From positions 494,394-558,393 of the forward strand of contig JAIVFI010000034.1 of the NCBI GenBank assembly GCA_025558095.1: DNA of 64,000 nucleotides, in the 5' to 3' direction. A model generated the notes under the pieces. That model was given only the letters and a program-made list of their open reading frames with translations, did not search any database and had not been told where the DNA came from. The translations under genes were made by a program, and so were the position numbers. This stretch comes from Hyaloraphidium curvatum SAG 235-1 (taxonomy: Eukaryota > Fungi > Monoblepharomycota). Positions 9,576 through 51,090 of the stretch are shown in pieces. Positions within the stretch are counted from its first letter, which is position 1; each line of letters opens with the position of its first letter.

Positions 9576-10676
9576 TTACAAGGATGATGTCTTCCTGATC
9601 ATCCTGCCCACCCCGGCAGCAGTCAGGGCCTCCGCCACGAAGCCCTCTGGATCTTCGGGTGTTCCCTCCGGCACGGCCAGGACGGCCGCGTGCACCGGGC
9701 CCCTGTCCCCGTCGTCGACCGCAATCATCGTCCAGGAGAAGGTCAAGCCGTCGACGACGGCCTCGGGCGGCAGGAGCAGGAGCAGGAACGACGGCGGCGA
9801 GACCAGGGAAGGCGAGAGCGAGGTCAGCAGCGCGAGGCGCGGAACTTTGCCTTCCGCCGTGGCGCGGATCCCCGAGAACAGGCTCCGCTGTAGGTCTTCC
9901 GATAGCTGAGAGAGTTGCGCGTGGGTGAACCTCTCCACGGCAACGGCATCCTCTGCTGGGCCCGAAATGGTCACAGAAACCAGCGCCGACAGTGTTCGTG
10001 CTTCCAAATCCGTCATGGGCGATTCAACGATGCCGGATGCCGCCGGAGTCCTTCGGAAAGCCTCTGCACGAACGCCTCTGCCGGCGATCCCCGCGCCCAT
10101 CCACTCCAAGTCCTGCTGGGCAACGAAACCCTCCCCGCCTGCTTCCCCCGGCGGCGGATCAAACACAACGACGCGCTCCCACTCGACCGAGAGAGCACGG
10201 AACACATCCGGAAGGCGGAGGAGCGGCCATTCGGGGTCCGAGTCCTGCAGAGATGCGGGAGGGGCAAACACGCAGCGCACGGGGCCGATTGCGCGCAACG
10301 CGTGCAAAATGGCCGGATAGATGTCCGGCCGCCGTCCGTCGGTTGTTGCCGGCGCGTCCAACCGCACGATGCAGGGCACCATGCTCGCGAGCATGACGCC
10401 GTGGACCGCCGCGGCCAGCCGGAGGTACGATGTCGCGCGAGGAACGAGCAGCGCCACGGCATCGCCCGGACGCAGGTCCCCGTAGACCGACAGCGTGGCC
10501 GCGAGCCGCGATGCCGCGTGGAAGTGGGATTCGTGAGTCGCGGCAAGGAGGCGGCGCGCGGGCGGCGCCCCCGGCGACAGCGCGGCAAGCAGCGGCCGCG
10601 GTAAAGGCGGGCCCGGAGAACGCCAGTAGCGCTCCGGGAACCACGGGGAAGGCGGATTCGCGGGGTTGTTCGTCAT
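9576..10676 (-). CDS. Degenerate, truncated adenylate-forming (AMP-binding, 4CL-like) domain protein
   Basis: LRPGDAVALLVP resembles the ANL N-terminus. The P-loop region is degenerate (VTISGPAEDAVAVERFTH) and the C-terminal catalytic motifs are absent. Confidence 0.45.
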   Translation of the reverse strand: MTNNPANPPSPWFPERYWRSPGPPLPRPLLAALSPGAPPARRLLAATHESHFHAASRLAATLSVYGDLRPGDAVALLVPRATSYLRLAAAVHGVMLASMVPCIVRLDAPATTDGRRPDIYPAILHALRAIGPVRCVFAPPASLQDSDPEWPLLRLPDVFRALSVEWERVVVFDPPPGEAGGEGFVAQQDLEWMGAGIAGRGVRAEAFRRTPAASGIVESPMTDLEARTLSALVSVTISGPAEDAVAVERFTHAQLSQLSEDLQRSLFSGIRATAEGKVPRLALLTSLSPSLVSPPSFLLLLLPPEAVVDGLTFSWTMIAVDDGDRGPVHAAVLAVPEGTPEDPEGFVAEALTAAGVGRMIRKTSSL

Positions 10677-10891
10677 TGTAGTCGGCTAGTCGCGTCGCGT
10701 CGATCGGTGGCGTCGTATATCGGACTGCGAAGCTAGAGCAGGCCGGGAAGAGTTACAAACTCCGTCCAATCGTACAACCCCAGCAGTGCTTATCTTGATG
10801 ATCAGCAAATCAAGTTACAATGAGACAATATAGATCCAACGTGGCCGTCGTGGCCGTAGCTACTGGCGAGGGAGCCCTTCAGGCGCGGTCT

Positions 10892-12330
10892 TCAGATGCT
10901 ACCCGGCACGGCGCTGCGCCAGACTTCGAGGAACCCGTTCTTCTTCCAGCCCGCCTCGATTCTCTCGCGGCCCGCGTGCCCCTCGTAATCCTTCAGCCCA
11001 TCCTTAAGCATTCCTCGCAGGTCGTCCTCCGAGAGCGGACCGGCCTCGCCGTCGGCCTTGACAAAGTAGGCGGTCTTGGGCTTCTTGCCCTCCAGGACGC
11101 CGTCGGCCCACGCGGCAAGCCGCTCGTGGAGGATCCTGACGGCGGGGAGGAATGCCATCCCCGCGAAGAGGTGCGTGGCGCCCTCGTAGATCTCGAGCTC
11201 GGCGGGGATGCCGGCGCCCGCGGCGCGGAGGTAGAAGAGGGTCGAGTCGTCGCGGAGGCGGTCGATCGCGCCTGTCTGCATCCAGCACGGGGGGAAGGGC
11301 AGCTTGGCGAGCTCGGTGGGGTCGGCGTAGAGCGGCGAGACGGCGGGGTCGACGAGGTTGTCGGCGTACGGCGAGACGTACTCCTTGTCGCCGACGACGC
11401 TGCTGGGGTGGACGCCGGCGACGACGGCGCCGGGCAGGGGGCAGAGGTCGATCACGCGCGAGGCAGGGGTCGAGGCGGAGAGGTCGAGCCAGGGGGTGAA
11501 GCCCGTGACGCCCGCGGGCGCAGGGTGGCCCTCGCGGATGACAAAGAAGGCCGTGGCGAAGGACATGTTGCCGCCGGCCGACATGCCCCCGAAGAAAACG
11601 TTGGACGGCTTGAAGCCCTGCTCAAGCAGCCAGAGGTAGGCCGAGGCGCCGTCGTGGAGGGCGCCGGGGAAGCGTTCGGCGGGTGCGAGGCGGTAGGTGG
11701 GTGCGAGGCAGTAGAAGCCCTTGGAGGCCAGGGCGATGGCGGAGCCGCGGATCTGGGTGGGGTCACCGATCACTGGGTGGGAGGGGATCAGCGAATCCGG
11801 GCCACCAGCATTGCGAAGGGAGGGATCCCACCGTAGCCGCCCCCGTGCCACAGAATAAAGGCCTTTTGCTCCGCCGGCGCCTTGCCGTCCGCCGGGGCGA
11901 TGATCTCGGCCTCGACCGGGTCGGCATCTCCCGAAATCGGGTCGTCCGGGAAAGCGCGCCGCGGAATTTTGACGGTCGAGTACGTCAGGCCGTCGGGCAG
12001 CTTTGGCGCTGCGCCGCCGGCGATGCGGGCGCGGACCTTGGCCGTCGCCGGGTGCGGGGCGACTGGGAGGCATCGGCGCGGAGGCACAGCGAGCTGTCAG
12101 ACCGCCGAGAAACATCGAGAATCGCAGCAGAATGACCCACGGATGGCACCCCAGTAGAGGACCGAGCGGGCAAACGTCTCGAGGAGCTCGCGGCCCGTCG
12201 ACCAGGTCGAAATCCTCGGATCGGTCGACAAAAGGCCGATGGCCGCCAGCGCGCGGCGGCCGACGACGCGGGCCACCGTGGGCCCGATAAGGACGAGCGC
12301 GATGAGCGCCGTCTTTGCTGCAGCCGCCAT
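10892..12330 (-). CDS. Alpha/beta hydrolase, HSL-family esterase/lipase, multi-exon
   Basis: WHGGGY, YRLAPAERFPGALHD, nucleophile GMSAGG, DRLRDD, YEGATH. Confidence 0.88.
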
Positions 12331-41786: not shown

Positions 41787-42210
41787 CGGGGGCTGGCCGG
41801 GCCCCGGTGGGAGGCGGCTGCGGGCCCATCGAGTGGCCCTGCGAGTTGGATAGCGACCGGTGTTCCGGGATATTGAACAGGGAGCAGGGATACTCGGTGT
41901 GGACGGGGCCGTGCGATGGGCAAGCGTGATACTGGGCCGGGGCGGCCGGCGGAGAGCGACGCGCACGCGGTGGCGCACCGGACCTCCCGCAGCAACTCAC
42001 GGCATGAGGCCGGGATATGGGCAATCCACGATGACGCGCTATTGTGACGCGGGATATCGGGCGGAAGGCGGTGGTGGGTGCAGCTGGCCCCGGCGAACAA
42101 ACCCCTCGGGACCAAACGCGCGCGGAGATCTTGCCGGCTATCAGGTCACTCGATGGAAGGCCCGGATATTGAGTATCGGCAGCGGAGACTCGCCGGCCGC
42201 CGTGATATGA
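41787..42210 (+). repeat. Diverged long direct repeat, copy A, rich in CGGGATAT motifs (partner about 50651-51090)
   Basis: Collinear shared blocks GGGCCCCGGT, GCTGCGGGCC, CTGCGAG.TGGA, CGGGATATT and GTGGA.GGGGCCGTGCGA. Confidence 0.75.
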
Positions 42211-42262
42211 GGTCCCACCGGCGGCTGTTGGGGGGCGTGATATGGATCTGTTTACTAGACCA

Positions 42263-42330
42263 AAACCCTTCAACCCGGTTCAACCCTCCTTCAACCCTCT
42301 TCAACCCTCTTTCAACCCTCCCCAACCCTC
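42263..42330 (+). repeat. Tandem array of about 10 bp TTCAACCCT-like units
   Basis: Six CAACCC cores between 42271 and 42328. Confidence 0.85.
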
Positions 42331-42645
42331 CCCCACCGGGCAAAACCCCCTGAGAGGCCACCTGCGCGCCGGTCCCGTCCCAGACACGCGTCGGCGTAGC
42401 CTTCTCTGCCCTCGAATCAACGCTACCGTCGCGAGGAGCCTCGCCTTCCCGCGTGTCGCGACGGTTTATAGCTTCCTGTCCCCGGGAGGAGACGAGGCCT
42501 CTGTTGAAGAACCCCTGGGGACATTCTGCACGAGAATGACTCCAAGCAGGGCAGTCTGAGCTCTAGGAAGGACTGTGGCGCCGAGGACGAGGCCAACTGA
42601 TCCGAACCGTCGCGTCTCGACGCGACTTCTCGGGCCAGCGGAGGC

Positions 42646-45600
42646 ATGGGTCGGAACCGGAACACGGGCGGCGCGAAGAAGGTCTCTGGCGGCGTGAAGA
42701 AGGCTAAGGTCCCCGCGACGAAGGCTTCGGACGCACCAAAGCAGACGAAGAAGCGCGGGCGCCCGCCAAAGACCGCAGCGCCGCCGGCCGGGCAGCCGGA
42801 AAGCGGAGGGGAGCCCGCCGGACAGCAGCCACAAGCTTCGGCGGGTGAGGCACCTGCAGAAGGCCGTCCTCAGCACGGAACGGTCTTCCAGCTCGAGTTC
42901 TCGGCCGCCCAAAAGAGGAGGTTGCCGGGGAAGAAGGTTACCCCGTTCACCCATGGTCTCCAGCCTTTTCCCTTCGACCTACGACGTCATCCGGAGCGCT
43001 TCGTCCTCCGGGATGGAGGGGATCCGATTTTCAAGGTCCTCAACGGGCCGGGAACCCCGGAAATGGATTCTCTCGTGACGCTTCGGCCGACCTTCATCCT
43101 TTCCCCCTGGGAGGGCTACCCGGACTTGGCGCGGCTCATTTGTCCGACGTGCGGCTTGAAGCTGAAGCCCAGTGCTTGGGTTCAAGATCTCTTCCTCATG
43201 CGTGGGCCCCATGGAGAGTTGGAACTTCTTTGCCCCCGGCGATACGTTTGCGAGAACTTTGGGGAAGCCAAGGCGGGGAAGTGCACCTTCCAAATTGGTG
43301 CCCACAACCTGCTCGATAAAATTTCCGCGGACCTGCGCTACGTCGGTAGGAACCGCTCCCCGATCGATCTTGTCGACCTCGCTCATCATTCGTCGGCAGT
43401 GTTCCCTTACGAACGGGTCGGCCACTCGTACGTGCACATGTCGTTCCTCTCGAAGGTCTATAACCTGGTGAACGAGTGCGGGGCGGGCATGACGGCTAAG
43501 ATCCTGAACGGTACGGCTCTTTCTGAACTGGTTCTTGCCCTTTCGTGACATGTCGGTTCCAGCCGACCTGGAAGCCGAACATCACGTCGTTGCGCTGCAC
43601 CTTCAACACCACGGGATGCCGGGCCCCATGCCGGATGCGGAGACGACCAGCGCATTCTTCTCTTCAGGTAACCTTTTGTGTGGCATCGTGAGGACACGCT
43701 GTGACTCCGTTCCCATAGACTCTTCGGGATCCAAGCAAACGAGCATAGATTCCTTTGTCGTGAGATCAGACTCGGCTGAAAACGACTCGGCACCTTCTCA
43801 GGCGGGGCCCTCCGACGGCACGACCGTACCGACGTTCGCCGGCCTCTTCCGGCAGAGCAGGAAGAAGCCGCAGTCGATCCAGGAGTCAATGGAGGACGAA
43901 TTCTCGTGAGTTGGGCCGCGATTCGGGCTGAGCCTTCGCCTGTGTGTTGACTTGGCGTCAGAATGGCCGGGGATGTGATCGACGCTGCTTTTGTGACTCG
44001 TCTACACGACGCAGTTTGGAACCGATACGGCGACCATCTTTTCCACTCATATCAGTACCAGGCTGACTGTGGGTTCTGGCGGAACGGATTTGGTTTCGCT
44101 AATTGGCTCATCTCCGCCGCGCAGGCCGGAACATTGCGCAGGACGGACTGGAAAAGACCGCACTGCACCAAGCTTACGTGCACGACGAGGAGAATGGGGG
44201 CCACAAGGCCCTCAACTCCAGCAAGCATGCTGACGGCGGTGCTGCCGCGGATGCCGAGAAGGATGCGGCTGCAAAGGTGAACGGCGGCCGCGTGGCGGCC
44301 GAGTCCATGAGCAGCAAACCTCAGCTGATCAAGTACATCACCGTGACTGGTACTCCTCTTGGCGCGGTGAGCCGCTCCGCGCTGCCCATGCAGCGGAGCT
44401 TCTGACGACGTTCGCAGTACATGGCCCGGAACAAGGGTGACGACGCAGCCAAGCACGGCCTAGAGGTTCTTCGTAACTCTTTGCGGGCTCAGAAAGCTGC
44501 GGGCCGTGGAATCGACGGAAAGAAGCTTGATTCGGGGAAATCTGTCGGCGCCTTTGAGGAGCCGGGGACTCCGGTCATCGTGCTCCAAGTGGACCGGTGC
44601 TGTGGCTCGCCGGGCTCTTTAGCCCCACTCGTGAAGGCTGTGTTTGGCGATCTCGAGGTCGTACGTCTCGACCATTTCCACTGGGTGCAACGGATTTGCG
44701 AGGACGTCGGGGTCACGGATTTTGTCAAGGACAAGATCATCGGCATCGTTTGGAGTTCCATTCAGTTCCCGGGAGTTGAGCTCCCCAGCGGGGAGAAGAC
44801 GCCGCAGCCGATGCTGCCACGCGAGGAAGCCATCAAGGCCTTCGACGCCGCTAAGAACGAAGCTCTTCGGTACCACGGCGGTCTTCCTCCAAAGAAGGTC
44901 GAGGTGTTTGAGAAGAACTGGGCAAACGCTCGAGTGCACCTGGAAAAGGGGTGTTTGGACGATCCAGAGATTTTGTTCTACATCGCGGCAGACGGCTCAG
45001 TGATGGTTGCTAGGGGAAGCAATCGTCTCGAGGGCTATTTTCGGCTTCTGCAGGACTGGCTCGGCCGCCACGCGAAACTCGAGGACACCATCCTGCAGGA
45101 GATTGACCATTTCGATCTCGATTACATGCTGACCGTGTTGCGCATCAAATTCGGCGACTTTTGCGCCCAGCAGTTGGGCAGGAATCCGGCTCTTTGCCAG
45201 GTGCTGGAAGCTCGGAACCGCTTGGCTCGCCAGAATGGTCACCCTGCACAATGCAACCCGCTTCTGGAGGATCACGAGTGTTTTGAGATTCGTGCCGTCA
45301 CCTCGGCGGAAGCACGGCAAGCCGGGAAGGCGATCCGGGACCAGCAGGCCCACGTCGCCGAAAGGGAAAAGGATCCGGCTGTCCCGAAGGCGCGGCCCGC
45401 CTCGCCTCGCGGATTCACTCCGAAAAGTCGTCCTTCGCACAAGCCGTCGCCGTCTCCGAAAGCTCGTGGTAGAGCCGCGCCGAACTACGGCATCAAGGCC
45501 GAGTTTCAGCGCACTGTGGCCCAGGTAAATGATTGCGATGGAGTGGATTCATGGTCTACTCAACATGTCTGCGTTCATTAGCTCGGGTCCGCCGTTGTAG

Positions 45601-46662
45601 CCACCTCAGGCTTGTTCTCGCCGGTCATTTCGTCTCCAACCGGGCCTTCGAGCCAAATGTCGCCGAAGGCTGCCTCTACTGCCGCTGCAAGCCAGCCTCT
45701 TTCGTTTCCTATGGAGGAAGACACGCTGGAGGTTCCCGTCGTTCCTTCTCTCTCTTCCGCGCCCGTGCAGGCTCTAAACCGGCCTGTGGAGCCTGTATTG
45801 GAGTGGGTGGACGCCATTTTCGGATCTCGGCTTCTGGGCTCATCCCTCGTCTTTTGCAGGACGCCGGCGCCCTTGCCCGTCGCCTTTCAGCCGTCAAGCG
45901 GTGCAATGGCCTTGAGCGGCAAGCGGAAACGTGAGGATTCGGTTCAGGGACGGGCAGATTCGCCGGCGGCACCGCGGCCGGCCTCGACGTCGGTTCCGGC
46001 GGCTAAGAAGCGGGCCATGCCGCCGGCGCCTGGGACAACATCGTCTCTGGCTCTACCCGATGCTTCCACATTGGCAGCTGGGCCCGCTTTGCTCGAGCAC
46101 GTGCCGAGGCCCCTGCACTTGCCGCCCGAGATCTCGAAAGAGGCTTGGGCCGAGGCCCTCCTCGCTGCCTTCGCTCATGTGGCCCAGAAGCTCGTCCAAG
46201 GTGCTTCGACTGTGTCGGTGAGCGGCATACCGGCTTCTCTCTGCCGTCGCGCTGGTGGTTTAACGTCAGTTGGACCGACAGGTCGCTCCTTCGTTGACCC
46301 TGCCGGAAGTTGCTGTTTCGGCCATGGAACCCGCGAAGCCCAAGGTGCGAGGGCATGCCCCAAAGGATGAAGCTCAGCTATGTCGGCGCTGCGGGCAGCT
46401 CAAGGAGGAGACATCCCGGGCTGCTCATGTCCATCGGCTGGGCCTTTGCGATGATGGATTTCGCCGTAGCGACGACACGCAGCGCAAGATTACCATCCCC
46501 GCTTACGGCACGCGCCGCGCGGAAGATGGAGGTCCCGACTGGGCCTACCTGGAGGGAGAGTTTCTCGACCTCCTTGATGCCAAGGATGCCACGCTGCGTG
46601 GCCCCCGTCTGACGGCCTACGAGGCGTTGAAGGTGGTTCTTGTGACGGAATTCCCGAAGTAG
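42646..46662 (+). CDS. DDE transposase, DUF6729-containing Mutator/ISL3-like type, multi-exon
   Basis: AT-hook KRGRPPK; Cys domain CPTCG...RRYVC...LLDKISADLR/VFP. Catalytic candidates NIAQDG, LQVDRCC, RLDHFH, GCLDDP and RGSNRLEGYF; C-terminal CRRCG...H...C knuckle. Confidence 0.75.
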
Positions 46663-47880
46663 TAGATCGGTTTCATGTATATCATTGTGGAATTCAAGCA
46701 GGGCAACTCATCTGAAGTCCCCATTGACCGTCCTGGTGAACACGGACCCGGAAGGCGATCGTATGTGCTCGGATGCGGCCATAGAAGTGATTGAATCGGC
46801 TCCAGCGGCCATGGTAGAGGTAATGCGATGCACAGAAAGGCATGTGCTTGATGACAGGATTGAGGAGCTCGACACACCGGCGCAAAGTGGCACTACATCG
46901 GGGGAGGGCGTCGGACCTGCTAGTCTTGACCTGCTGGACCACCTACACCAAGCGAAAATCGATGGCCGGTAGCCGTTCTAGCTTCTGCGCACTTATTTAC
47001 ATCGAGTCAGCGTATTGCGCGGAGCAGACCGGGTTTGGTGCGTGGTTGCGCGCCATCGGCGTCAATTTCCACTGACGAGGGGGGGGGTCTGGGTCCCCGA
47101 GGTGCTGCGGACCTAAATTGAGATGCAGGCCGAATTCGACGCTTTCATACTACTACTTGAGGAATCGGCACGCCTCGCAGTGCTGCATTGCGTTTTGTGA
47201 GCGGGATGGCTCCGGAACGGCTCAAAATCGGCCAAAATGGGTCCGCGCCGACCGCCCGCGTTCACGCACAGGCGATTCAATCGACGCGGCTTTTCGACAA
47301 ATCGCGTATTTATATGCATTTCTAACGCCTCATAGCTGTGGACAACTTCACGTCCTCATGCGGGGGCTCCGCGAGGTCCCAAACTTGAGCATGCCGTGCA
47401 TGGAGCTCTGGGAGCGCTCGCTGACCAGTAGAGGATGGAAGAAAGCCATCATCCATCGGAATGACTTTATTGAACCATGTATGGTACATTAGAACGCTCG
47501 AGCATCTTGCTGCTCGGCATTGACGAGATGCCGGACGTCCATTCAAGTGTGCAGCTGTCAAGCCCGGCCCAGAGTGAATAAGACCTGCGGAGCTCTTCTT
47601 GCGCTCCCAAACCACGCATGTAAATGTGATTAGCTCTTGTCGGGATTTAGGCGTTTCCTCCATATCGTCCCTTCCCCACCAGGCTCGACGGGACGTGAAT
47701 TCGGGACGCTCGCTCACATTCGGCGGTCCTGCGACCTGAATAGCAAATGACTGGCCTTGAGTTCCCCAGGGAGGGAAGTACAACATCTCTTCTATCCTAG
47801 TTGGTCTCGGGGAGGAGAACCGAGCACTAGCATAGCGTGTAGTGAAGTTCCAAGATCGCGGTTCGGCGGCGGGTCTCAGA

Positions 47881-47912
47881 GAGTCTATCCAAGGGAGCCC
47901 TTGGATAGACTC
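47881..47912. repeat. Perfect palindrome: 15 bp arms with 2 bp spacer AG
   Basis: GAGTCTATCCAAGGG-AG-CCCTTGGATAGACTC. Confidence 0.95.
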
Positions 47913-48480
47913 CCCCGAACTCCGCTCGGTTTCCGATAGCGATGGCTGGAGACCCGACCGGTGCCACGAGAGAGCACCAAGCCGGACGTCCAGCGGCCTT
48001 GTCGTCTGCTTCCTACTGCCTCTGGACGGCGGCGCATCGGAACATTCCTTCCCCCTCGGTTCGTGCTCCGCCGTTTCGTGGCACGAATCCTGACCAACGG
48101 CCGTGTTCTCCCCCATTCTCGCTCCTATCTGGACCGGAAAAAGATCCTCGGTGCCTCCGTTGGGGCAGCCAACGGCTGTACAGTGCTTGGGGGCCTCGCG
48201 ATGTAGGTGCCGCGAAGCTCCTTTTCGACACCCTTGTCTGACGTCTTTGAACCCCTTCCTCCTCACTTTCCGGCCCGTCTATGGTCGCTCGCGCTCATGT
48301 TCAAGCCGGTTGCGGGCTCAGTTCGTGTGTGTGACGCTCTGGTACCCCTGTCTCTCGGCGGAACGTCTGTCGCGCTTCAGGGACCGAAACCGACCCGCCA
48401 CCGCCTCCTCATCCCGATCGAGCTTGCATTTGGCCCTCTCCTGCTTCATTGCGGGCCGCTGATTGTCCTTCTGGGCGGAG

Positions 48481-49534
48481 ATGGAGCCCCAGCATGCTTC
48501 CAGCGCGCTGGACGTGTCCCACCTCGTTTCGCTCGTTGGAAAGTTCGGAACCTATGCCTCGGCGGCCCAGCTCGGATCTGGGCGAGGCCTGCGCTGGATT
48601 GCCTACGTCAGAAAGTCGCTGGACGACGGGAGCGACAATCTGTCGCTCGTGGATCAGATCGGGATCATCCGGGACTGGGCAACCGCGCGCGGGGACATTG
48701 TCGTCGCGGTGCACGAAGAACTGGCCAGCGGGGCACTGCCCAAGGGGCCTGGGGCGTTCGAACGGAAGGAATTGCATGCTGCATTCGTCTCCTTGCTCGC
48801 CTCGAACGACTACGCCGGCCTGGTCGTCGTCCGGCTGGACCGGTTGTCTCGCGACATGGTTGCGACCCACAGCTACATTCAGGAGCTCACCCAGGCCCGA
48901 AAATCCTTCGTTTGCGTCAACCAGCCCGAGCTGACCTTCTTCTGGAGCGGCTCGGCGCCGTCGGCTACTTCGTGGCTGTCACTCGCAATGAACTCGCTCA
49001 TGGCACAGTTTGAGCGCGAACAGGCGAGCTTTCCCCGTCTTTTGAAGGCGTAGCACCTCTAATCATTGTTCATTTTAGGTTCGCGAACGGACCAAGACAT
49101 CCGTTGCTCAGCGAGTGCGCCGCGGCATCGGTGTCTCGCTCCACTCCCCGTTCGGGACGCAGTTCGAGGCGACCATGCCTGACGGCACGCGACGCCTTTC
49201 GTTCAGCTCCAGTGACCTCGTCGGACGCGCCCGTTCGAACGGGAAAGCTTCACCGTTGAATATCGTGGACCATCCGGCTGAGAGAGAGCAGTTCCTCTTG
49301 CTTGCCGCCTTCCACCTGTCAGCTCTTCGGAAAGGCCAGAAACGGGAGCCGCGGGAGTACGCGGATCTGCTTTCCAAGCACTCCGTGAACGTCAATCATC
49401 GGAACCCAGGAAAGCTGAGAACCAACGGGAACTTGGTCAAGGCGACGATCAAGTCGATCAAGTTCTTCTCCTCCAGGGACGGCGGTAGCTTCGAAGCGGC
49501 GGTTGCGGAGCAAATGGCAAGACTGGAAACGTGA
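48481..49534 (+). CDS. Serine recombinase (resolvase catalytic domain plus recombinase-like C-terminus), 332 aa, one GC-AG intron 49024-49078
   Basis: YVRKS nucleophile motif, SLVDQ, EELASG, ERKEL, VVRLDRLSRD. Splicing restores helix E AQFEREQ/VRERTK...RRG...SPFG; branch point CTAAT and acceptor TTTTAG. Confidence 0.88.
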
Positions 49535-49989
49535 ACGGGGCGTTCACGATCTGTGCCAGGGGTGGGGAGGCGCGGAGGACGGGGCAGATGCCAAGATAGA
49601 CCATATCCTCTTGTAATCCTTTCCTCGACATTACTGCATCCTTATCTGTGTTTCAAGCAGTCATTTCCATTCATTTGATTCCGTCTTTGATGCCAAGCCC
49701 GCGAAATCTAGATGGTCTTGCCGGAAACGTACACGAGGAGGCAGACAGGTCACCATCGGCCACGGAGCTGCTCGTCGACATGGCATCGGCAATCCTGCAT
49801 GTTGTGTTCTCCATCTTCGGCAACCAGCCGCTTCTCGGGAGGGGTTCTGAAGTGTGGGCGAAAAGTTGGCCACATCTGAGGTGACCAGGGGACCAAGCGT
49901 CCCTCGCGTGAAGCCCCAAACAAGAGCAATCAAAAACGACATTTGCTCTCTTCACCAAAGAACCCGTTGCGCTTGATTCCAACAGGTAG

Positions 49990-50370
49990 ATCGCGCCAAC
50001 GGCGCGCAGCGCGTCTCGAGCGTCGACAGTCCGTGAGCAGCGAGCCCGCCATAAGATCCACGTGACACGCTGAAAGAGCTCCCTCCAACGAACATCCGAC
50101 GGAGCGAAGAGCCAAGAAATGAGCACATTCGAAGGGCGAGCGCGACAAACTTCGAGCCGGCCAAATCCTGCAGCACACGAGCGACGCGGCCCATTCCGCC
50201 CGTGCCTGAGGTTTCTAAAGGTTCCCAAAAGTGCTCTCGGCGCGCGGTGCTCGAAGGCACCCGCGTCGCGTCACAGCGAGGAGATGTGCATGGTTTTCCG
50301 TGCCCCAAGAGTCCGGAAACGCGTTGCTTCAGGTTCCACTGGCCAACTGCTCCATAGAAAAGATAAAATC
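49990..50370 (-). pseudogene. Possible decayed C-terminus of an L1/Tx1-like non-LTR retroelement ORF2
   Basis: PCTSPRC...EHFW followed, in another frame, by WRELFQRVTWILWRARC. Confidence 0.3.
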
Positions 50371-50650
50371 ATCGGATAACCGTGTTTCCAGGAGGACTGC
50401 AGCCCGCGAGGCGACTCCGCGCAAGGTCCGGGAAGAGCACCATGTCCTGGACCCCGGCGCCGCAGAACTCCACATCGAGCACCAGGGAGGCAATCGGGAG
50501 GTCTCGAGACGCGCCAGGAGAGCCGGGAATGGGCCAGAATCGCGCAAAATGGCGTGGAAACGGGCTCCGGATTCGGGTCAGTAAACATTATTTTCCTTAA
50601 TAGATTTTTCAATCTCCAGGTAATCAAAAACAAAAATCGCCGCTCCGGGG

Positions 50651-51090
50651 CGGGGTTGGTGGGGCCCCGGTAAGAGGCCGCTGCGGGCCAACCGCGTGCT
50701 CTGCGAGCTGGACGGTGGTGGATCTTCGGGATATTAAGCCGGGAGCTCGGGTGCGTGGCGTGGATGGGGCCGTGCGACGTGCCGCGACATGCTGAGTCGC
50801 GGGGGCCCAAACCGCCCAGAAAAGCACCGTATGTAGCGGCCCATCGGACCCGTCCTAGTAATTCGGACACGAAGCGGCGTCGGGATATTGGATATGAACG
50901 CGGATGCGCTGCTGCGAGCTGTGATTTGGGCCGCGAGGGGGGTGACCTCGGAGATCACCACGGTCGGCTCGGGCGCGGAACGCTGCGGTGGCCCGAGACT
51001 GCACCCGGCCGGGGCGGCGGCCCTCAGGCAGAAACCTGCATCGGGATACGGGCCGCCGCCAGGATCTGCGGCTCTGCGGCGTGGTATGTG
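50651..51090 (+). repeat. Diverged long direct repeat, copy B
   Basis: Aligns by eye to 41787-42210 at an offset of about 8865 bp. Confidence 0.75.

Follow-up and report, generated by a model that had tools for sequence, protein, structure and literature searches.

Hyaloraphidium curvatum is a monoblepharid, a chytrid-like fungus. In the genome of strain SAG 235-1 (assembly GCA_025558095.1; 31.9 Mb, 55 contigs, ~66% G+C) we analysed a stretch of 64,000 nucleotides (nt), called the window below, which forms the last 64 kb of the 558-kb contig JAIVFI010000034.1 (here C34; forward strand, positions 494,394 to 558,393). We found that the window contains an 8.4-kb mobile element with two genes, a multi-exon transposase-like gene (here T) and a serine recombinase gene, and with a perfect palindrome between them. 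Serine recombinases are regarded as prokaryotic or viral enzymes and are standard tools of genome engineering; to our knowledge, the few that have been described from eukaryotes so far are of the IS607 type. A preliminary description of the window, made from the letters alone, had recognized the recombinase gene and its intron and had overlooked the context, in which the gene is one of two in a recently active 8.4-kb transposon and not a lone nuclear gene. Our results indicate that it is very probably a functional-looking spliced gene, present in its messenger RNA (mRNA) form in a public sequencing run (X1, described below) and carried by a recently active DNA transposon. The element and its genes are arranged as follows.

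42234..50641, + strand: whole mobile element, 8408 bp; the block of 97.5-100% identity among the copies on contigs C34, C46, C4 and C9
42646..46662, + strand: T, DDE-transposase-like gene, multi-exon; open frames, an N-terminal AT-hook and cysteine cluster, and the core motifs VDRCC...LDHFHW and GSNRLEGYF
47881..47912, no strand: perfect palindrome, two arms of 15 nt around a centre of 2 nt, GAGTCTATC-CAAGGG-AG-CCCTTG-GATAGACTC; candidate recombinase binding and crossover site
48058..48142, + strand: intron 1 of the 5' untranslated region (5'-UTR) of the recombinase gene, 85 nt, GT..AG; joint present in an X1 contig
48203..48305, + strand: 5'-UTR intron 2 of the recombinase gene, 103 nt, GT..AG; joint present in an X1 contig
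48481..49023, + strand: first coding exon of the recombinase, 181 codons; encodes a leader of 35 residues, then the catalytic domain and the first half of helix E; PF00239 match at 6e-13
49024..49078, + strand: GC-AG spliceosomal intron, 55 nt, phase 0, inside helix E; skipped in an X1 contig
49079..49534, + strand: second coding exon of the recombinase, 151 codons and stop; encodes the remainder of helix E, followed by a C-terminal domain that resembles the recombinase domain of large serine recombinases

Splicing of the recombinase gene

The coordinates (48481-49534) and sequence of the recombinase gene are as the preliminary description had given them, and the YxRxS, SG and DRLSR motifs that it reported are intact, at Y42-x-R44-x-S46, A-S-G 82-84 and LDRLSRD 119-125. 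The translation of exon 1 (48481-49023) ends in ...AQFEREQ and that of exon 2 (49079-49534) begins with VRERTK...; the intron between them reads GCGAGC...CTCTAAT...TTTTAG. For transcript data, we found one public run that contains the locus (X1, from 2018, as contigs), and its contigs were aligned over 44650-50649. They skip six short segments, every one of which has spliceosomal ends and three of which lie in the recombinase mRNA, and they leave the intergenic region 46850-47849 uncovered. The X1 contigs thus behave as complementary DNA. One contig of 1378 nt covers 48306-49021 and resumes at 49077-49636. It omits 55 nt, whose placement is free within 3 nt, and the only placement with spliceosomal ends is GC..AG at 49024/49078. 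This is the removal of a 55-nt GC-AG intron that had been predicted, with the junction at 49023/49079. Furthermore, the intron and its GC donor are retained in all four genomic copies, so the joined form is absent from the assembled DNA.

The gene model and its splice were already public. The sole near-identical public protein, "Resolvase [Hyaloraphidium curvatum]" (P0001, 332 residues), is encoded by a 99% identical copy on contig C9 and consists of exon 1 and exon 2 joined exactly at FEREQ/VRERTK, the same junction as at the window intron. Exon 1 is identical to P0001 at 180 of 181 residues, and exon 2 is identical to its residues 182-332 at 150 of 151. P0001 was used as the query in the full-length analyses, in place of the joined window exons. 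Exon 1 alone matched the profile PF00239 at 6e-13 (49.5 bits, profile positions 2-126 of 145), and P0001 matched it with 63.8 bits over positions 2-143 of 145, against a cut-off of 23.3 bits. Since the match reaches position 143 in the spliced protein, intron removal restores the end of the catalytic domain and helix E, in agreement with the EREQVRERTK that had been reconstructed from the letters.

The intron had been taken to argue against contamination. We found that contamination is excluded by the three spliceosomal introns in the mRNA, by the position of the gene on a 558-kb nuclear contig, by several other nuclear copies and by an intron at the same position in a second, 38% identical recombinase family of the same genome. 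The intron of the second family measures 73-76 nt, has GT-AG ends and interrupts the same codon position (TERSS/IAARTA aligned with FEREQ/VRERTK). A dead pseudogene, which had also been considered, is contradicted by the PF00239 match and by the splicing seen in the X1 contig. The helix-E intron is absent from the homologues of Chytridium lagenaria and Obelidium mucronatum, and for this reason it gives no evidence of deep vertical descent across chytrids.

A short relative of the large serine recombinases

In an alignment of P0001 with 13 relatives (14 members), residues Y42, R44, S46, Q59, G84, R95, D120, R121, R124 and E178 are invariant. The catalytic domain begins at residue 38, behind a low-confidence leader, and the placement of PF00239 in both exon 1 and P0001 bears out the earlier statement that this domain comes first. 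The IS607 TnpA profile NF033518 scored 18.3 bits against a cut-off of 110, in line with the claim that an IS607-type N-terminal helix-turn-helix (HTH) is missing. The profile PF07508, which had been named for a check, behaved otherwise: the C-terminal half (exon 2) had no Pfam or NCBIfam match, PF07508 included. The zinc-ribbon profile PF13408 had no match in the protein either, which stops at residue 332.

When P0001 was searched by sequence against solved structures, it returned only a marginal IS607-like match (E=0.44), so a fold search was needed. An AlphaFold model built with the 13 relatives reached a predicted local distance difference test (pLDDT) score of 73. Its catalytic domain aligned with TP901-1 integrase (Z 16.6) and with gamma-delta resolvase (Z 15.1, root-mean-square deviation 2.8 A). 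The longest fold alignments were with large serine recombinases, namely Bxb1 (model 37-329, chain 1-280), phiC31 (35-307, 1-283) and an SPbeta-type integrase. They take in the catalytic domain, helix E and the 'recombinase domain', and their ranges on the integrase chains end at ~280-294. The recombinase-like C-terminus of the preliminary description is therefore recovered at the level of the predicted fold, as an alignment with the recombinase domain of large serine recombinases. In the model, the protein ends where the zinc-ribbon and coiled-coil domain of those enzymes would start.

When 1.8 billion representative proteins were searched exhaustively, just 49 reached E<=1e-3. The closest named relatives come from the zoosporic fungi Phlyctochytrium bullatum, Amoeboaphelidium occidentale, Obelidium mucronatum, Chytridium lagenaria, Quaeritorhiza haematococci and Rhizoclosmatium, and the remainder of the close group from unnamed metagenome contigs; homologues occur in at least 7 zoosporic fungi. 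Among the nearest non-fungal relatives, which were the next hits, 12 of 27 carry PF07508, and the Pfam tally of these 27 contained no HTH_7 or MerR-type HTH. Together with the modelled fold, these results relate the recombinase to the large-serine-recombinase lineage and set it apart from the IS607-type enzymes and the small HTH resolvases.

An 8.4-kb element with 7-bp target duplications

The 1054-bp recombinase gene occurs four times in the genome at 99-100% identity. We compared 20 kb around each copy and obtained a common block with sharp ends, which sets the limits of the element. It starts with GGCGTGATAT and ends with AAAAATCGCC, and its termini share an inverted match of just 4 bp (GGCG/CGCC). 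Four full copies are assembled, in addition to two telomere-capped fragments. The copy on contig C9 is flanked on both sides by the exact 7-mer CGTGGGC and the copy on contig C4 by the exact 7-mer GGTCCGG. Two exact 7-bp matches at independently defined ends indicate target-site duplications and not chance. DDE transposases make such duplications. In contrast, transposons moved by serine and tyrosine recombinases produce none (PMC3627910), and the 7-bp duplications thus point to a DDE-type insertion rather than to insertion by a serine recombinase. Kyakuja elements of fungi likewise have 7-bp duplications and lack terminal inverted repeats (PMC12730594, section 3.2.1).

Two further features mark the left end of the window copy.

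42227..42233, no strand: left flanking 7-mer of the window copy, GTTGGGG, which differs from the right 7-mer GCTCCGG (50642-50648)
42267..42331, + strand: subterminal array, confined to the left end, in which TTCAACCC recurs five to six times with 10-11 nt spacing

The unequal 7-mers indicate that the window copy was rearranged after insertion or that it is an unresolved or recombinant product. The TTCAACCC array comprises 5 exact copies, compared with 1.35 expected by chance across the whole window. No RNA family was detected by Rfam in 42000-51000. Telomere repeats, (TTAGG)n, terminate 24 contigs of the assembly, which indicates that these are nuclear chromosomal DNA.

The recombinase frame is open in all four copies, and between the C34 and C9 genes there are 5 synonymous and 2 non-synonymous changes. 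For the transposase-like exons of these two copies the counts are 23 synonymous and 29 non-synonymous, and the transposase-like gene of the C46 copy is frameshifted. As evidence on selection, these counts are thin but consistent.

The transposase-like gene and its linkage to the recombinase

The X1 contigs skip three introns of T, at 45525-45581, 45803-45859 and 46218-46281. An exon of 373 residues carries the motif VDRCC...LDHFHW and, ~130 residues further on, GSNRLEGYF. The hallmarks of Mutator/ISL3-like transposases are a D...D...E triad, (C/D)xxH after the second aspartate and (S/T)NxxE. In the ESM Atlas, look-alikes of two separate T exons included MULE, Mutator, ISL3, DUF6729 and KDZ CxC (CxC4, CxC5) proteins, which we use as leads only. 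A word-indexed homologue search with a 367-residue exon returned nothing at E<=0.01.

More informative were the genes beside recombinase genes in other species. A neighbour of the Amoeboaphelidium recombinase matches T at E=4.9e-4 over 134 residues with collinear D/E motifs, and a neighbour of the C. lagenaria recombinase matches it at E=2.8e-5 over the E motif and an LDIFH block. The C. lagenaria homologue also has AFDETF upstream, and its D block matched PF01610 (ISL3 transposase) at E=1.3e-4 with 22.3 bits, below the cut-off of 23. In Obelidium, an open reading frame (ORF) beside the recombinase gene reads LDETF...SSDN...LDIWH and matches the ORF at the same position in Rhizoclosmatium at 5e-18. 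In tests with hidden Markov models from which members had been left out, the top matches outside the training set, although weak, fell within these neighbouring genes. Linkage of a recombinase with a transposase-like gene is thus present in five species and in two gene orders, at least four of the species being zoosporic fungi other than H. curvatum.

These comparisons suggest that T encodes a divergent DDE transposase with Mutator/ISL3/KDZ-like motifs, outside any Pfam family, which would act by DDE catalysis. We consider it quite likely that the element inserts by means of a DDE-type enzyme from this upstream gene.

Two Obelidium mucronatum contigs (loci L036 and L040) carry 310-residue recombinase genes of one 90%-identity protein cluster, and upstream of each, at an equal relative position, stands the same transposase-like motif. 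Obelidium mucronatum thus also has more than one copy of the element.

A conserved palindrome upstream of the recombinase gene

A distance of 585 nt separates the palindrome, which is intergenic, from the recombinase ATG downstream of it. Each copy of the element contains the full palindrome once, and the rest of the 31.9-Mb genome has none. Its core, CAAGGG-NN-CCCTTG, is present exactly in five independent foreign loci and always 5' of the recombinase domain. Such exact cores would be expected ~0.009 times by chance in the ~147 kb of foreign loci (our own arithmetic), compared with the five found. In loci L038, L042, L043 and L045 the recombinase gene starts 100-230 nt downstream of the core. 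The C. lagenaria locus L038 has the centre AT and 17-18-nt arms ~100 nt upstream of the gene, and the P. bullatum locus L042 has the centre TA and perfect 33-nt arms ~125 nt upstream. A second C. lagenaria locus (L039) has the centre GT with the core upstream of the recombinase domain, and the metagenomic loci L043 and L045 have TT and GA. In Amoeboaphelidium a version of the core with two mismatches is found 70 nt upstream.

In the H. curvatum genome the 12-base core has 7 sites, 4 of them in the element, and a control pattern has 3; this distribution indicates that it is not a general promoter motif. The three other matches (on contigs C3, C11 and C26) were rejected as chance matches, having no symmetric arms and no relation to the element. 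The centre dinucleotide varies among loci (AG, AT, GT, TA, TT, GA), and the outer arms differ yet are symmetric in four of the six loci and partly symmetric in the two metagenomic ones. Crossover sites of serine recombinases, such as hix, gix and res site I, consist of half-sites around a 2-bp centre. Symmetric half-sites, a varying centre and arms that differ yet remain symmetric have the form expected of such a site. From this form and its conservation, we judge the chance that the recombinase acts on the palindrome to be about even.

Two palindrome-bearing sequences are unusual in structure. In C. lagenaria L039, a 539-residue gene (10001-12230, P0012) has its resolvase domain from about residue 275, and the core (10833-10846) falls within its 'coding' span; P0012 is probably a fused or mis-called gene model. 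In the C4 copy of the element the right arm of the palindrome is tandemly triplicated, which amounts to a 29-nt insertion at the palindrome centre (47897).

Proposed mechanism and alternative explanations

On balance we favour a reading with two enzymes, in which the element would belong to a transposon family whose recombinase works at the palindrome in the way of a resolvase. With the spliced transposase-like gene, the single perfect palindrome and the recombinase gene in this order, the transposase-like protein would most likely move the element and make the 7-bp target duplications. The recombinase would most likely bind the palindrome as a dimer, on half-sites that flank the 2-bp centre, and would then recombine two palindrome copies. 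Such recombination could separate fused products (cointegrates or translocations) of a putative replicative or aberrant transposition, or could otherwise resolve or rearrange copies, and binding upstream of its own gene might also allow the recombinase to regulate itself. The more specific role of resolving fused transposition products in the manner of Tn3 is drawn by analogy, and we propose it tentatively.

Several observations weigh against this account. On the side of the transposase, the 5' exon structure of T (joins within 43546-44405) is provisional, and the first catalytic aspartate was sought in the window gene and not located. The open frames and exons of T gave nothing useful against Pfam up to E=10, PF01526 (Tn3) included. 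PF20499 had no match anywhere in the genome, and PF18758 (KDZ) had none even at E<=10, with 14 prokaryotic control genomes also matchless. A profile of five transposase-like segments gave only chance matches among the sequences of solved structures, and a single-sequence AlphaFold model of the 373-residue exon was unusable (pLDDT 39). The similarity of T across species is weak, mostly between E 1e-3 and 1e-5 and confined to short motifs. The transcript evidence depends on a run whose identity as RNA was guessed by a tool and is deduced from its splice-like joints. On the side of the site, binding and cutting of the palindrome by the recombinase are proposed from sequence, and the palindrome could alternatively be a promoter or operator element or a 5'-UTR RNA hairpin. 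The loci of Obelidium and Rhizoclosmatium yielded no core. The mosaic copy on contig C46 changes from one sequence to another at 43621-43735 and not at the palindrome, so this rearrangement arose elsewhere than at the proposed site. That the element transposes replicatively is itself putative.

The recombinase could instead be a passenger, an accessory gene that a DNA transposon captured and that takes no part in transposition chemistry; it would be regulatory, directed at the host or hitch-hiking, with the palindrome as its promoter or operator. Accessory enzyme genes are indeed carried by several superfamilies of fungal DNA transposons, among them the TET/JBP genes of KDZ, hAT and Harbinger elements (PMC12730594). 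A transposase-like gene and DDE-type 7-bp duplications are present in the element itself, and the second recombinase family, which lacks a transposase-like neighbour, indicates that a recombinase can exist apart from one. However, the linkage of the two genes recurs in five species and two gene orders, and the dyad-symmetric site with its variable 2-bp centre is conserved across loci whose proteins are ~30-40% identical, in a form that fits a serine-recombinase substrate rather than an ordinary promoter. We regard a passenger gene as unlikely, and still as an explanation to be taken seriously. Much less probable, in our estimation, is that the recombinase is the transposase or integrase of the element, as in IS607, Tn4451/Tn5397 and the phage integrases, with a circle that inserts through the palindrome as an attP-like site and with the upstream gene as cargo. 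The nearest prokaryotic relatives are indeed large-serine-recombinase types that integrate and excise elements, and in several metagenomic or draft contigs the palindrome lies 30-450 nt from a contig end, which could be a junction. Yet two copies have exact 7-bp duplications, which serine-recombinase transposons do not give (PMC3627910), and the ends common to all copies bear no relation to the palindrome. Integration through the palindrome would leave one half of it at either end, but every copy carries it whole and inside the element, and the protein lacks the zinc-ribbon and coiled-coil domain that confers attP/attB selectivity on large serine recombinases. A 20-kb 'reintegrated circle' was also rejected, as the comparison of copies bounds the element at 42234-50641 and the flanks share just a 159-nt repeat of 73% identity.

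The gene might finally be a contaminant or the decaying relic of a bacterial or viral transfer, with no present function. Serine recombinases are mostly prokaryotic or viral, and the family is rare, with 49 representatives at E<=1e-3 among 1.8 billion proteins. Against this stand the three spliceosomal introns removed in the X1 contigs, the open frames in all four copies with mostly synonymous changes, the complete set of catalytic residues, the location of the copies on large nuclear contigs, some of them telomere-ended, and the homologues in at least 7 zoosporic fungi. A relic or contaminant is thus refuted as far as the sequence and transcript evidence reaches, and we give it a negligible probability.

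Relation to known elements

Our account, in which T inserts the element and the recombinase acts at the palindrome, combines traits of several known systems. The recombinase shares with the large serine recombinases (Bxb1, phiC31, TP901-1 and SPbeta-type enzymes, TnpX/TndX) the N-terminal catalytic domain, the full set of catalytic residues and the long helix E, followed by a domain whose predicted fold aligns with their 'recombinase domain'. It differs from them in having only 332 residues, no zinc ribbon or coiled coil and no score with PF07508, and in being encoded by a nuclear gene with three introns on an element with DDE-type duplications. The order of a large transposase-like gene followed by a dyad-symmetric candidate site upstream of a serine recombinase gene recalls the Tn3 family (TnpA, res, TnpR), as do the short target duplications and the proposed logic of transposition followed by site-specific resolution. 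Unlike Tn3, the H. curvatum element has a T protein without detectable PF01526, no 38-bp terminal inverted repeats, a duplication of 7 bp instead of 5 bp and one 32-bp palindrome instead of a three-subsite res. Its recombinase is of the large-serine-recombinase lineage and not a small HTH resolvase, its host is a eukaryote with linear chromosomes, and its replicative transposition is putative.

Kyakuja/KDZ elements (PMC12730594) resemble the H. curvatum element in their 7-bp duplications, in the lack of terminal inverted repeats and in carrying an accessory enzyme gene, and their large transposase, like the T protein, bears a cysteine cluster at its N-terminus. In contrast to them, the H. curvatum genome has no PF18758 match, the termini are GG..CC here and CA..TG in Kyakuja, and the accessory gene is a serine recombinase and not TET/JBP. 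IS607-type elements (in Saccharomyces kluyveri, in Fanzor2 elements and in giant viruses) also place the catalytic domain of a serine recombinase in eukaryotic genomes, in multiple copies (PMC2715888, PMC3627910). IS607 TnpA has a MerR-like HTH ahead of the catalytic domain and no target duplications, whereas in H. curvatum the catalytic domain comes first and 7-bp duplications are found. The possible likeness of T to Mutator/ISL3 transposases lies in its VDRCC...LDHFHW and GSNRLEGYF motifs, which are collinear with those of homologues that also bear DETF; the first aspartate of the triad was not located in T.

A literature search, which was incomplete, found no description of a chytrid serine recombinase or of a eukaryotic element with both a DDE transposase and a serine recombinase. 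Our results describe a non-IS607 lineage, related to the large serine recombinases, that is spliced and multi-copy in a fungal nucleus and tied to a transposase-like gene and a conserved candidate site in several early-diverging fungi. It is possible, although doubtful at this stage, that these elements represent an undescribed, Tn3-like superfamily of eukaryotic DNA transposons in zoosporic fungi (chytrids, monoblepharids and aphelids), with DDE insertion, perhaps by a replicative route, and with a trimmed relative of the large serine recombinases that resolves the fused chromosomes at CAAGGG-NN-CCCTTG. In that case no earlier serine-recombinase resolution system would be native to eukaryotic nuclei, and short (332-residue), eukaryote-adapted recombinases with a defined ~30-bp site would become available. 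If the recombinase acts on the palindrome, the element would define a new class of eukaryotic mobile element with a two-enzyme, Tn3-like logic, would offer a natural test of how replicative-type transposition could be tolerated on linear chromosomes, and would provide a compact recombinase/site pair that already works in a eukaryotic nucleus.

Rearranged copies and the second recombinase family

The copies of the element differ in their state of preservation. The C4 copy measures 8159 bp and has a 278-bp internal deletion in the intergenic region (window 47491-47768). The C46 copy (contig C46, 167224-175631) is mosaic in structure: up to 1.4 kb into the element it resembles C9, left flank included, and from ~43.7 kb on it is identical to C34, for more than 8 kb into the right flank. 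Either ectopic recombination really took place here, or the assembly contains an overlap or chimera. Around the window copy we also found a diverged direct repeat of ~159 nt (73% identity), at 41789-41947, 290 nt before the left end, and at 50652-50807, 11 nt after the right end. Possibly it belongs to a different repeat that served copies of the element as an insertion target, and a relation to the unequal 7-mers is conceivable.

The two truncated copies have distinct flanks, and each is capped by (TTAGG)n. The one on contig C37 (528953-531647) retains the left 2.5 kb and is broken at the window-equivalent position 44736, and the one on contig C39 (485039-485554) retains the last 351 bp and is broken at 50291. 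A telomere-repeat 'loose end' of X1 at 50291 is explained by this break in C39. Two telomere-healed breaks inside the element, in a genome with just three or four full copies, suggest that the element is prone to breakage or causes it. The telomere repeat of the assembly is TTAGG-like and always stands at the high-coordinate end of a contig, never at its start.

The second recombinase family, 38% identical to the first, is found on contigs C9 (336635-341291, with the recombinase at 338-340k), C22 (421397-423732) and C2 (639743-641905), in units of ~2.3 kb. A transposase-like gene was sought beside the paralogues on these three contigs and none was found; the palindrome core was likewise not found beside this family. 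On C9 two units stand head-to-head and form a 4.66-kb inverted duplication. The public model for the family, P0005, is apparently mis-spliced after helix E.

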